Positions 39,744 through 44,951 of a DNA stretch of 64,000 bases are shown here, one piece after another (within the stretch, counting starts at the first letter, position 1; every line of letters begins with the position of its first letter). The notes beneath the pieces were generated by a model. The model had not been told where the DNA came from and did no database searches. It saw only the letters and a list, made by a program, of their open reading frames with translations. Source of the stretch: Macrostomum hystrix (taxonomy: Eukaryota; Animalia; Platyhelminthes); assembly GCA_950097015.1 (NCBI GenBank), contig CATNEN010000005.1:1054001-1118000 (forward strand). Direction: 5' to 3'. A program made the translations under genes and the position numbers.

Positions 39744-42700
39744 ATGACATTCCCGATTCATCCAAATAATTATAACTCGATGCTGCCTCCGCCACATCAG
39801 TGCGAAGAGACCAACGTGTTCAGGTAATGAAATCCTAAGGATTTGCTTGGTTCTTGGATGCGCCTTTCAGGTCCTCCACCTCTATCCTTCAGGCCCCTTG
39901 CGTCTATCCTTCAGGCCACTTCAACTCTATCCTTCAGGCCCCTTCAACTCTATCCTTCAGGCCCCTTGTGTCTATCCTTCAGGCCCCTTGTGTCTATCCT
40001 TCAGGCCCCTTGTGTCTATCCTTCAGGCCCCTTGTGTCTATCCTTCAGGCCCATTGTGTCCATCCTTCAGGCCCCTTGTGTCTATCCTTCAGGCCCCTTG
40101 TGTCTATCCTTCAGGCCCCTTTCTATCCTTCAGGCCCCTTGCGTCTATCCTTCAGGCCCCTTTCTATCCTTCAGGCCGCTTCAACTCTATCCTTCAGGCC
40201 GCTTCAACTCTATCCTTCAGGCCCCTTGCGTCTATCCTTCAGGCCCCTTTCTATCCTTCAGGCCCCTTGCGTCTATCCTTCAGGCCCCTTGCGTCTATCC
40301 TTCAGGCCCCTTGTGTCTATCCTTCAGGCCCCTTGCGTCTATCCTTCAGGACCCTTGTGTCTATCCTTCAGGCCCCTTGTATCTATCCTTCAGGCCCCTT
40401 GTATCTATCCTTCAGGCCCCTTGTGTCTATCCTTCAGGCCCCTTGTATCTATCCTTCAGGCCCCTTGTGTCTATCCTTCAGGACCCTTGTGTCTATCCTT
40501 CAGGCCCCTTGTGTCCATCCTTCAGGCCCCTTGTGTCCATCCTTCAGGCCCCTTATGTCCATCCTTCAGGCCCCTTGTGTCTATCCTTCAGGCCCCTTGT
40601 ATCTATCCTTCAGGCCCCTTGTGTCAATCCTTCAGGCCCCTTGTGTCAATCCTTCAGGCCCCTTTCTATCCTTCAGGCCCCTTGCGTCTATCCTTCAGGC
40701 CCCTTTCTATCCTTCAGGCCGCTTCAACTCTATCCTTCAGGCCGCTTCAACTCTATCCTTCAGGCCGCTTCAACTCTATCCTTCAGGCCGCTTCAACTCT
40801 ATCCTTCAGGCCGCTTCAACTCTATCCTTCAGGCCGCTTCAACTCTATCCTTCAGGCCGCTTCAACTCTATCCTTCAGGCCCCTTGCGTCTATCCTTCAG
40901 GCCCCTTTCTATCCTTCAGGCCGCTTCAACTCTTTTCTTCAGGCCAAGAGGTCTTTCTTGTCTCTCTGTGTCCTTTTTTACTCAATCCCAACTGTCGAAT
41001 CATGAGGTGTACCTCCTGAACTCATCTGATTATGTTCCTATGAGTCAAAGATCGCTGTGCTGCATTCACAGAAATGTCACATTCAGAATCCAATATTTTC
41101 GGATAGAACCAAACAGAATCAAGCAAAATAAAATTCAGTGCTTTTTCCATAGTTTAAATAAATGTATATTTAAAAGTCTATTTATATGGTTATCTTATTA
41201 ATTATCGCAGATAACTAATAGCAGTGACTAGAGGTATATCAGGTATATGATAAACACTATTACTGGTTGGAGAATGACTAAATCGAGTTTATAGGTGATT
41301 AGTCATTTAGTAAATAGTCAACTGGGTTAGTAAAGAAGAATTGTTGTAACTGCTATGCATTTGAAATCCAACTTGTGCTAGATATTTTTAGATATAATTA
41401 TTACCCATAGAAATGAGTATACCTAAGGAATATACCAAAAAAATATACAAAACTGTGCGTATGTTCGCATTTCGGTAGATTTTTGACCACTTTATGATCA
41501 TGACCAGTCAAGGATCAGGCCAATGACCAGTTCAGGATCAGACCAAGGAGCAGTTCAGGATCAGACCAATGACCAGTTCAGGATCAGGCCAATGACCAGT
41601 TCAGGATCAGACCAAGGAGCAGTTAAGGATCAGAGTAATGACCAGTTCAGGATCAGACCAATGACCAGTTCAGGATCAGACCAATGACCAGTTCAGGATC
41701 AGACCAATGACCAGTTCAGGATCAGAGTAATGACCAGTCAAGGATCAGGCCAATGACCAGTTCAGGATCAGACCATGACCTGTTCAGGATCAGACCAATG
41801 ACCAGTTCAGGATCAGACATTAACCTATGACCCTCTAATCCTAATCCTTCAGCGAAGGCATTCGCCGAGTTCGCCTACTTCGTGCTGCCCAGCTGGAGTG
41901 TGCCACATTAATCCTAGTATGGATCGACGTTACCATGGTAACGCATCAGATCGTGTTAGACTTCACTCTGTCAGGATTGAACGGTAGGATATTAGTTGTT
42001 TGCAACAACGGTGTGTGGACTTGAAAGCTAAAAATCGATACTCCTTTTCTGGAAAATTCCCTATTAAGTGGCCCACCATATTGTTGTAGGCACCGACTCG
42101 ACCAATGAGAATGACACATCTGAACTTTTGTCGGAGACAATTGCTACAGCATTTCGGCGCGATCATCCGGCACTGAACAGTCAGGCTTCAACGGCTCTAT
42201 TCATTGCCATCACTGTCATGGCGTTCCTGTTTCTGCTGGAGGTCAGTGAGACCTGCCTGTTTATCTGTCTGTCTGTCTGTCTGTCTGTCTGTCTGTCTGT
42301 CTGTCTGTCTGTCTGTCTGTCTGTCTGTCTGTCTGTCTGTCTGTCTGTCTGTCTGTCTGTCTGTCTGTCTATCTGTCTGTCTGTCTGTCTGTCAGTCTGT
42401 CTGTCTGTCTATCTGTCTGTCTGTCTGTCTGTCTGTCTGTCTGTCTGTCTGTCTGTCTGTCTGTCTGTCTGTCTGTCTGTCTGTCTGTCTGTCTGTCTGT
42501 CTGTCTGTCTGTCTGTCTGTCTGTCTGTCTGTCTGTCTGTCTGTTTATTTGCGATTCTATATTATTAATTTTGCACCGTTACTAAATTTCTGATTCTCCT
42601 GGAACCCCGCAATTTATAGACAATGGCAAGAAATGTCTACTGTCGCGTCTCGCTGAAGCGGTTTTGCATCCTAAATGTGAGTGTGATTTAATAAAAAAAA

Positions 42701-44951
42701 CACTAAAAATTCATATTCCAATATGCAAATTGACAGTGTTCAATTGAAAATCTCTTTCTTACAAAAACACAGGTGTGCGACGCCATCCTCTCCGCCGCTT
42801 CGTTCTGCATTAACCTGGCCCTGTTAATCGCTAGGGTCACACCGCTGGCTAGAGATTTTGTTGCCTTGCTGATCGCCTTTCGCTTGATTCGAATGGTGAA
42901 CTTTTTTGGGGGTAAGCCGTGAAATTCAAAATTTAATTGATTTTAAGGCAACTTAATCTTTTTTTAGAAAGATGCGCAAACTACTCTACTACTTACGACC
43001 TTTTTAGTAGTATGAAAGTGATCAAGCCTCATTACTTTATGTTTCCAAACTATAGGTGTAACACGCCACGAGAAGCAGCAAATTCTGCGTATGCTTGATG
43101 GCTACAGGCGAGAGGAGAGCTTCAATGCTGAGCACCAGCGAATGCTGCAATCCGAACTTGAGAATCGAACCCGGGAGTGTCAGGATCTCAGGGAGCTAGT
43201 GAAATCGGCCACGCTGTCGAGGAACCGACTGAGGCAGAGTGAGCTGGGGATTGCAGTGTGGATTCGATGGAAATTTGATGTTTTTTTAATATCGGACAAT
43301 GCGCAGATGTGGATCTATAACATTGGATATCGCCAGGATGAAGATGAATAGGGAATGAATAACGATTGTTAACGCAAGTATAGCGATTGATTAAGCAAGG
43401 ATAGCGATGGATAACGCAAAGATAGCGATCGATTAAGCAAGGATAGCGATTGAAAAAACAAGGATAGCGATGGATAAAGCAAGGATAGCGATAGATAACG
43501 CAAAGATAGCGATTGATTAAGCAAGGATAGCAATTGATAAAGCAAGGATAGCGATTGAAAAAGCAAGGATAGCGATTGATAAAGCAAGGATAGCGATTGA
43601 TAAAGCAAGGATAGCGATGGATAAAGCAAGGATTGAATGAAAATGACACTCTGTATGACAATAAATCGACATACAGAGGGAAAATGGATTGTTAACAAGA
43701 TTGATTTTGAAATGATAAAGATATAGACACAGTATAATATTCATTGATAAAAAATTAATTGAGATTGATGGCGATTGATACAGTATGAATAGAGGTTGAT
43801 ACAGGATGAATAGAGATTGATAATGTATGGATAGAGATTGATGCAGTGTCGATAGAGATTGATACTGCATGGATAGAGATTGATACTGCATGGATAGAGA
43901 TTAATAATGCATGAATAGAGATTGATACTACATGGATAGAGATTGATACTGCATGGATAGAGATTGATAGTGCATGAATAGAGATTGATACTGCATGAAT
44001 AGAGATTGATACTGCATGGATAGATATTGATAATGCTTTGATACTATTTAATGACCGTCAAATTAATTGTTTTGTGACGCTATTTTTGCAGAGCAGCAAC
44101 TGCAGATTGAGCAGCAGCAGCAGCAGCCAAAGTCGCAGATAATTAGAGATGGCATCGACAATCACGAGTCGAGCACAGACTTCATTAACGGCTACCTGAC
44201 TGCGGGCAGTTCCGAGCGCAACGGCAGCAGCCCTCCAGATGATTCCGGACACAGTTCGGACTCGAGTCCCGACTCGACGCATGAGGCGTTCGGTGGAGGA
44301 CTGGGTGAGCTGTTAGATACAGTCACCTGTTATACAAATTCACCTGTTAGGCACAGTCACCTGTTAGACACAGTCACCTGCTAGACACAGTCACCTGCTA
44401 GACACAGTCACCTGCTAGACACAGTCACCTGTTAGACACAGTCACCTGCTAGACACAGTCACCTGTTAGACGCATTCAAATTTTAGACACAGTCACCTGT
44501 TAGACACAGTCACCTGCTAGACACAGTCACCTGTTAGACACGGTACAGTCTGTTAGACACATTATAACCTGTTAGACACAGTATAACCTGTTAGACACAC
44601 ATTACCTGTTAGACCCACATAACCTGTTAGACACAGTATAACCTGTTAGACACAGTATAACCTGTTAGACACACATAACCTGTTAGACACAGTATGACCT
44701 GTTAGACACAACATAACCTGGTAGACACAGTATAACCTTGTTAGACAGGCCTATTTAAAGCTACTATCATTATTTTAACTCATAATTTGAGTAGTCGATA
44801 AACTCCCACTTCAGATGAAGCAGCCCCAGACTCTCCCGTTATTGATATTGAGCTAGCTGAGGTTGTGGCCTTCGGAGCTTCACAAGCAGCAGCATCGGCA
44901 GCGCCCAGAGCTCGGCAGCAAAATGACAACAGTGTCAGTTCCCGAATGTAA
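39744..44951 (+). CDS. Voltage-sensor-domain-only membrane protein (Hv1/TMEM266-like), 363 aa, 8 exons: 39744-39823, 41853-41983, 42090-42241, 42620-42676, 42773-42911, 43056-43238, 44092-44304, 44815-44951
   Basis: All seven introns are GT-AG and phase-matched; 1092 nt open to TAA. S1 ATLILVWIDVTMVTHQIVLD, S2 ALFIAITVMAFLFLLE, S3 VCDAILSAASFCINLALL, S4 LLIAFRLIRMVNFFG, then a coiled-coil-like LQSELENRTRECQDLRELVK. No pore domain or phosphatase follows. Confidence 0.7.
39865..40945. repeat. 19-23-bp minisatellite (GCCCCTTGTGTCTATCCTTCAG and variants), about 50 copies, in intron 1 of the VSD gene
   Basis: Invariant CTATCCTTCAGG core in nearly every unit. Confidence 0.93.
41500..41818. repeat. 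23-bp minisatellite (ACCAGTTCAGGATCAGACCAATG)n
   Basis: Visible period. Confidence 0.9.
42264..42543. repeat. (TCTG)n microsatellite, about 280 bp
   Basis: Direct observation; lies in VSD gene intron 3. Confidence 0.96.
43375..44035. repeat. Two related 21-bp arrays in VSD gene intron 6 (GATAGCGATTGATAAAGCAAG about 43375-43630; GATAGAGATTGATACTGCATG about 43785-44035)
   Basis: Same period with a shared GATAGxGATTGATA core. Confidence 0.85.
44305..44745. repeat. 17-19-bp minisatellite (GTTAGACACAGTCACCT / GTTAGACACAGTATAACCT)
   Basis: Visible period; begins right at the exon 7 donor. Confidence 0.88.

Follow-up and report, generated by a model that had tools for sequence, protein, structure and literature searches.

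Is a voltage sensor of the Hv1 type that lacks both the tryptophan and the third arginine of its fourth helix still a proton channel, and what else could it be? The question is raised by a gene in a 64,000-nucleotide stretch of Macrostomum hystrix DNA (GenBank assembly GCA_950097015.1, contig CATNEN010000005.1, positions 1,054,001 to 1,118,000 of the forward strand), referred to below as the window, within which all unprefixed coordinates are numbered. The gene lies on the plus strand at 39744-44951 and is intact and conserved, encoding a voltage-sensor domain (segments S1-S4) whose last segment continues into a coiled coil, followed by a disordered tail. Its S4 (codons 42881-42910) reads R177-L-I-R180-M-V-N183-F-F-G186, with two arginines, isoleucine in the place of the tryptophan and asparagine at the position of the third arginine (R3), exactly as the first-pass annotation of the window had claimed. 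In the Hv field the S4 tryptophan is described as totally conserved and the second arginine (R2) as always present, and the motif RxWRxxR is used to find channels (PMC10911540, PMC10377628). Because the tryptophan is taken as perfectly conserved, screens built on this motif would miss the window protein and the Macrostomum family to which it belongs, that is, three paralogues in M. hystrix and an orthologue in Macrostomum lignano. No published description of this divergent family in Macrostomum was found in the literature. A flatworm list in a review names one Macrostomum transcript (GIJT01038552; PMC10377628), presumably that of the canonical Hv1 gene, because the field's criteria for an Hv channel (PMC10911540) require the tryptophan.

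Relationship to Hv1 and the register of S4

The relationship of the window protein to Hv1 was investigated by comparison with a canonical Hv1 from the same genome. Search, family-scan and folding queries were single exons of the window gene or the M. lignano orthologue P0003 (GenBank BOX15_Mlig005453g3, 342 amino acids); the joined translation was used to check the frame and to make local alignments. A reference was obtained by scanning the genome with a back-translated R-L-W-R-x-x-R-x-x-N pattern, which located a canonical Hv1 at G000:C1:21502244-21502598 (+) (L022:1177-1531), with S1-S4 in one exon, an S4 reading RLWRVVRIVN and a coiled-coil exon that follows the sensor exon, from L050:1480. 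This gene is apparently present in a single copy, as judged by protein search of the genome, and a large protein search with the canonical exon as query returned three Hv1 proteins. Its M. lignano orthologue, P0005, matched human Hv1 (5OQK) at 1.3e-23 and Pfam Ion_trans at 1.5e-9; recognition of P0005 by both phmmer and Pfam therefore indicates that these tools work on a normal Hv1.

Family scans and single-sequence searches did not recognise the window protein. Pfam assigned no ion-channel family to the six exons of at least 20 amino acids (exons 2, 3 and 5-8) or to the M. lignano proteins P0001, P0002 and P0003, returning weak coiled-coil noise only, and for the same exons and proteins the gathering threshold of Ion_trans (PF00520) was not reached, with no match at E-values up to 10. 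The Ion_trans check suggested in the first-pass annotation is thus negative for the window exons and the M. lignano proteins, although canonical Hv1, as a control, reaches 34-38 bits. Neither phmmer nor an exon-profile hmmsearch against solved structures found Hv1, and a search of the genome with Pfam VGPC1_C gave no match at the window gene. At the level of profiles, hhalign aligned the canonical Hv1 set with P0003 at 90% probability (E-value 1.7e-6, 143 columns spanning S1-S4) and with the local four-sequence family alignment at 89% probability, while the family alignment and the canonical Hv1 of the same genome were aligned at 94% probability (E-value 1.1e-7). The control, a four-domain channel of 1985 residues from the same genome, reached an hhalign probability of at most 0.6% with its four voltage sensors. 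A hidden Markov model (HMM) of the family likewise gave 14-26 bits to canonical Hv1 proteins but at most 1.5 bits to the four-domain channel and two other weakly sensor-like open reading frames (ORFs). In language-model features, which are taken as a lead only, the clusters nearest to P0003 were mollusc Hv1 (0.94), chordate Hv1-like (0.92) and TMEM266 (0.91). On the profile comparisons, kinship to Hv1 is remote but Hv1-specific, and the Hv-like character first proposed for the gene holds at hhalign probabilities of 89-94% and E-values of 1e-7 to 2e-6, compared with less than 1% for the four-domain channel.

The residue map was concordant in hhalign, MAFFT and hmmalign, with human numbering taken via the alignment of P0005 with 5OQK; MAFFT alignments of P0003 with exon fragments were discarded, several fragments being misplaced. 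In S1, D52 (41926-41928), the aspartate of the WIDVT motif, corresponds to the selectivity residue D112 in both hhalign and MAFFT, while Q59 corresponds to E119 and D63 to D123. In S2, F118 and E121 correspond to F150 and E153 and are followed by R125 at the position of K157. N140 corresponds to E171, D143 to D174 in S3 and N154, the asparagine of the motif SFCIN, to D185. Identification of the WIDVT aspartate with D112 and of the SFCIN asparagine with D185, and retention of the S2 F-x-x-E and the S3 aspartate, accordingly stand as first annotated. In S4, R177 corresponds to R205 (R1), I179 to W207, R180 to R208 (R2), N183 to R211 (R3) and G186 to N214.

S4 could alternatively be shifted by one turn, in which case R177 and R180 would represent R2 and R3, N183 would correspond to N214, F176 would replace the tryptophan and R1 would be missing, as in Aplysia Hv3, where R1 has been lost naturally. 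Spacing also slightly favours the shift, as the first arginine lies 23 residues past the D185 equivalent and R1 and R2 of the canonical gene lie at 21 and 24, respectively, so that the shifted register leaves the smaller gap. However, hhalign, MAFFT and hmmalign all chose the R1/R2 register, hmmalign with an S4 posterior of at least 0.9 in each of the four members, and the aromatic residue preceding R177 is not conserved, being Leu and Ala in the paralogues. In addition, the window gene is interrupted after S4 by an intron one base past the G186 codon, and the canonical gene by one that begins one base past the N214-equivalent codon. As intron position and phase coincide only in the R1/R2 register, the shifted register is rejected, and we consider it highly improbable. 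The register given in the first-pass annotation is retained, with no third arginine placed elsewhere.

Measured against the criteria by which the field accepts an Hv channel, the window protein has four transmembrane segments, S1-S4, without a pore domain, an acidic residue at the mid-S1 selectivity filter (D52), two positive S4 charges including R2 (R177 and R180), the minimum called for, and Hv1 homology that is detectable at the profile level only. It has I179 at the position of the conserved S4 tryptophan and N183 where R3 should be Arg or Lys. Under the field's own criteria it is therefore not an accepted Hv channel, though homologous and similarly built.

Predicted structure corresponded with this layout in part. 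From a single sequence, AlphaFold produced a poor model of P0003 (pLDDT 58), the Foldseek matches of which were meaningless. A second model was built from an alignment of eight rows, canonical Hv1 among them, and was hence partly guided by Hv1. In this model helices span residues 25-71, 91-125, 132-153 and 160-252 of P0003, S4 running unbroken into the long final helix, with pLDDT block means of 67-83 for the four helices and 88-98 for the coiled coil (residues ∼190-250). Foldseek returned nothing with an E-value below 1 for the alignment-based model, voltage sensors such as Hv1 (3WKV, 5OQK) and Ci-VSP appearing as weak rows only, and the VIA-align matches were mostly generic four-helix bundles, from which voltage sensors were not separated. 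Structure prediction, which had been suggested as a check, thus returned the four helices and the passage of S4 into the coiled coil, but fold searches did not discriminate voltage sensors, and structure contributes little to the case.

Gene structure, orthologue and paralogues

Local reading of the sequence resolved eight exons, each bounded by an AG acceptor and a GT donor where internal, which when joined by a local script give 1092 nt, an uninterrupted frame of 363 codons with its terminal stop. The first-pass annotation had arrived at the same exon count and length; the four transmembrane helices that it listed appear as four hydrophobic segments in the hydropathy of the 363-residue product, and its coiled coil as the long final helix of the orthologue model. 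All exons are on the plus strand. Exon 1 (39744-39823) begins with the ATG, encodes residues 1-27 of a cytoplasmic N-terminus and ends at a GT donor; its first 15 residues are identical to those of P0003, and the region matched P0003 residues 1-27 with 74% identity in a search of the genome. Exon 2 (41853-41983) encodes the pre-S1 helix and S1, containing D52, Q59 and D63, and exon 3 (42090-42241) a long S1-S2 loop with N-x-T sequons followed by S2, which ends in F118-L-L-E121. Exon 4 (42620-42676), flanked by GT-AG introns, is 57 nt long, runs from phase 0 to phase 0 and contributes 19 residues of the S2-S3 linker, including R125 and N140, while exon 5 (42773-42911) encodes S3 with D143 and N154, the S3-S4 loop and S4. 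The coiled coil continuous with S4 is encoded by exon 6 (43056-43238), which contains a conserved cysteine, C228 (43178-43180). Exon 7 (44092-44304) encodes the Gln-rich last part of the coiled coil together with disordered tail that contains the sequence DSGHSS (44241-44258), and exon 8 (44815-44951) the disordered C-terminus and the stop codon. The disordered region after the coiled coil extends over ∼115 residues, and an AATAAA is present at 44998-45003, 47 nt downstream of the stop.

An exhaustive search of 1.84 billion representative proteins with a profile of the S3-S4 exon (46 positions) returned a single cluster, from M. lignano. P0003 contains all eight parts and is contiguous over all seven junctions, including those of the 27-residue exon 1 and the 19-residue exon 4, and is 80% identical to the window protein over 192 tree columns covering sensor and coiled coil. 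GenBank models of M. lignano derive from a genome-guided RNA-seq transcriptome (PMC5730564), so that P0003 is transcript-derived and lends indirect support to the splice junctions of the window gene. Two other M. lignano models, P0001 and P0002, skip the 57-nt, phase 0-0 exon 4 and with it the S2-S3 linker. An annotation error is the likeliest cause of this omission, which may, however, reflect an in-frame isoform from which exon 4 is skipped. A further model, P0004, was rejected as chimeric junk. In UniRef, P0001 and P0002 carry the name of Ion_trans proteins and P0003 that of a voltage-gated hydrogen channel, all three names being automatic. Consequently, the description of the gene as hidden is correct with respect to the ORF track, in which it is fragmented because its long introns each hold a minisatellite, but not with respect to the databases, where the orthologue had already been deposited.

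Two further copies of the gene are present in the M. hystrix genome, on contigs C39 (L003:6876-7013, 7755-7817 and 8110-8169) and C34 (S3-S4 exon at L017:6189-6326); a weak match on contig C38 was spurious. Exon phases are the same as in the window gene, the S3-S4 exon is 139 nt long in all three paralogues and their reading frames are intact over exons 2-6. For paralogue pairs, the proportion of differing synonymous sites (pS) is 0.64-0.82, at which these sites are saturated, and that of differing nonsynonymous sites (pN) is 0.37-0.42. Saturated pS combined with lower pN and intact frames indicates that the copies are old and under purifying selection. These observations also bear on whether the gene model could be an artefact or the locus a pseudogene in decay, as introns full of minisatellites might suggest. 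Given GT-AG boundaries at all junctions, an open frame, a transcript-derived orthologue of such high identity, exon phases shared and frames intact in three paralogues, and pN below pS, this explanation retains only a minimal probability.

Conservation within the family is selective. All copies keep the S1 aspartate, a His-Gln pair, the second S1 aspartate, Phe-x-x-Glu, the S3 aspartate, R1, R2 and the coiled-coil cysteine, the S1 aspartate, R1 and R2 being invariant in all four members (three paralogues and P0003). Asparagine is found at the D185 position and the E119 equivalent is lost in every copy, while the E171 equivalent is lost in two of the three paralogues, the glutamate being kept in the C39 copy. 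S4 reads RLLRVLQ and RLGRTLQ in the paralogues and RLVRLLT in the M. lignano orthologue; thus where Hv1 has its tryptophan the window protein has Ile, the M. lignano orthologue Val and the paralogues Leu and Gly, and the R3 position is occupied by Asn, Thr and, in both paralogues, Gln. A DSGxxS motif is present in the disordered tail as DSGHSS in the window protein (residues 298-303), P0003 and the C34 copy (L017 ∼8256-8372) and as DSGTAS in the C39 copy (L003 ∼3168-3317), a motif which we take to resemble a beta-TrCP-type phosphodegron. Individual copies also have features of their own. The C34 paralogue carries an arginine at the N214-equivalent position (RLGRTLQLFR), and the C39 copy, in which the S1-S2 loop is very short, is the only one to keep the external S2 histidine (H140 equivalent) and the glutamate at the E171 position.

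A tree of eight sequences shows only that the family falls apart from canonical Hv1, each being a clade with full support, with a long branch between them. Relatives outside Macrostomum did not rise above threshold in the exhaustive search with the 46-position profile or in the word-indexed searches, for which P0002 and the sensor portion of P0003 served as queries and which returned M. lignano proteins only. The suggestion that the gene represents a lineage-specific subfamily is therefore sustained, as three paralogues with shared exon phases exist beside one canonical Hv1 and the large searches recovered relatives from Macrostomum only.

Minisatellites occur in every long intron, at 39881-40926, 41500-41818, 42253-42544, 43359-43633, 43773-44043 and 44310-44731, with unit lengths of 22, 23, 4, 21, 21 and 17 nt, respectively. 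The minisatellite of intron 1 consists of 48 copies, each with an acceptor-like CCTTCAG motif, and similar repeats surround the paralogues and the canonical Hv1 locus as well. An AG is located 7 nt upstream of the start codon (39732-39743, ctgtag followed by ACCAAAATG) and may be a spliced-leader acceptor; such acceptors are common in Macrostomum. As judged by eye from ORF translations, the upstream neighbour is the last coding exon of an SFMBT-like gene (32952-34067, +) and the downstream neighbour, from 45471 (+), a biotin-carboxylase-type gene resembling pyruvate carboxylase.

Conduction, sensing or altered selectivity

What might such a protein do? The reading that we favour, at slightly less than even odds, is that the window protein forms a coiled-coil dimer with a proton-permeable pathway whose gating would be fast, left-shifted and shallow, that is, weakly voltage-dependent. 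Dimerisation would occur through the coiled coil. A proton-permeable pathway could still be formed because the pair of S1 aspartate and R2 is retained. Opening would be faster, would occur at more negative voltages and would depend less steeply on voltage than in canonical Hv1, because the protein lacks one gating charge and both partners of the proposed Trp207-Arg211 latch. Mutants of Trp207 open ∼100-fold faster and at more negative voltages, from which the authors infer that a cation-pi latch between Trp207 and Arg211 holds the channel closed (PMC4621752), and both latch partners are absent from every copy of the Macrostomum family. Furthermore, voltage dependence persists in mouse Hv1 truncated between R2 and R3 (PMC10377628), and Aplysia Hv3, by analogy, shows that an Hv with two arginines can still conduct.

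Several observations weigh against conduction of this kind. The family fails the field's Hv criteria with respect to the conserved tryptophan and a positive residue at R3, its similarity to Hv1 is too low for detection by Pfam or phmmer, and several pore-lining acids of Hv1 are neutralised in the window protein (E119Q, E171N, D185N). Mutants of Trp207 lose proton selectivity above external pH 8 (PMC4621752), and by analogy the selectivity of the window protein may differ from that of Hv1. TMEM266, an Hv1 relative, is non-conducting. Finally, the structure models are of moderate quality only, the second having been built with Hv1 rows, and the fold searches were non-discriminating.

Part of this evidence points to a voltage sensor that does not conduct. 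In the manner of TMEM266, such a protein would signal onward by way of its coiled coil and conserved disordered tail, or it could act as a partner that modulates canonical Hv1 via the coiled coil. The layout of sensor, coiled coil and long disordered tail is like that of TMEM266 (PMC6392501), the tryptophan, R3 and three pore-lining acids are lost, the DSGxxS motif is kept in the tails of all paralogues and the canonical Hv1 of the same genome could supply ordinary proton conductance. Invariance of the S1 aspartate in all four members, despite heavy divergence elsewhere, is difficult to reconcile with a pure sensor, this residue being Val in TMEM266 (PMC6392501), and R2, its proposed partner, is invariant as well. 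We hold a non-conducting role to be the main alternative, to which roughly a one-in-three weight is due.

Alternatively, absence of R3 and the tryptophan may have produced a channel of changed selectivity, permeable to other cations or anions or showing an omega-type leak. The loss of proton selectivity in Trp207 mutants at high external pH (PMC4621752) is consistent with this, as is the placement of R3 beside Asp112 in the open state by several groups (PMC10377628). Non-acidic substitution of Asp112 renders human Hv1 anion-permeable, indicating that this region sets selectivity. However, the S1 aspartate itself is kept in the Macrostomum family, and sequences with a natural Lys at R3, or Gln in one fungus, are listed as Hv channels (PMC10377628), so that changed selectivity appears improbable. 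The proton-permeable dimer with altered gating remains our preferred, if tentative, reading.

Tentatively, and with more doubt than confidence, the three Macrostomum paralogues may be regarded as an undescribed class of Hv1-derived, voltage-sensor-only proteins that have lost the proposed Trp207-Arg211 latch in the course of evolution but not the selectivity aspartate. Conducting members would amount to naturally occurring proton channels, fast or near-constitutive, or to channels of altered selectivity, alongside canonical Hv1; non-conducting ones would constitute an invertebrate counterpart of TMEM266 signalling through a conserved, degron-like tail. In either case, one animal contains a canonical Hv1 and three relatives that lack both halves of the proposed latch but retain the selectivity aspartate and R2. 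The family therefore bears on whether aspartate and R2 suffice for proton selectivity, on the shares of R3 and the tryptophan in gating charge and in sensing of the pH gradient, and on how voltage-sensor-only proteins shift between the roles of channel and pure sensor. As transgenesis is possible in M. lignano (PMC5730564), in vivo tests are realistic.

Comparison with known voltage-sensor proteins

With Hv1 (HVCN1) the window protein shares a four-helix sensor without a pore domain, the S1 selectivity aspartate, the S2 Phe-x-x-Glu, the S3 aspartate, R1 and R2, a basic residue four positions past the S2 glutamate and an S4 continuous with a cysteine-bearing coiled coil; its gene and the canonical Macrostomum one have the post-S4 intron in common. 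It differs in that the family lacks the tryptophan and R3 and, except for the C39 copy, the external S2 histidine, and in the replacement here of N214 by Gly, E119 by Gln, E171 by Asn and D185 by Asn. In addition, the tail of the window protein extends ∼115 residues beyond the coiled coil and its sensor is spread over four exons, compared with one in the canonical copy. The window protein is unseen by Pfam Ion_trans and by phmmer against solved Hv1, whereas the canonical copy is recognised by both.

TMEM266 (HVRP1, C15orf27) is likewise an Hv1-related poreless sensor with a coiled coil and a long disordered C-terminus, and it too has lost the D185-equivalent acid. Its published residues include three S4 arginines with a lysine before the third, Val in place of D112, Met in place of D185 and an Asp after S4 (PMC6392501). 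The window protein has two S4 arginines and keeps the acidic residue at D112, and thus lacks both the three-arginine S4 with its lysine and the non-acidic D112 position of TMEM266; in these published residues it differs from TMEM266, which in the language-model ranking also stands behind Hv1. According to the same source, human TMEM266 was co-expressed with Hv1 in a search for altered Hv1 gating (PMC6392501).

Natural variation in S4 charge is also known among Hv channels. Aplysia Hv3 (xPWRxxR) has two arginines and is proton-selective with weak voltage dependence (PMC10911540). Like the Macrostomum family, it is a spiralian Hv paralogue in which one S4 charge has been lost naturally and loops or tails are enlarged. 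However, Hv3 lacks R1 but has the tryptophan, R2 and R3, whereas the Macrostomum family has R1 and R2 but lacks the tryptophan and R3; the window protein does not carry the xPWRxxR motif, and the register tests place its loss at the tryptophan and R3. Fungal Hv1 and mollusc Hv4 (RxWRxxK, with Gln at R3 in one fungus) share natural variation at R3 with the Macrostomum family but, unlike it, keep the tryptophan and, one exception aside, a positive residue at R3.

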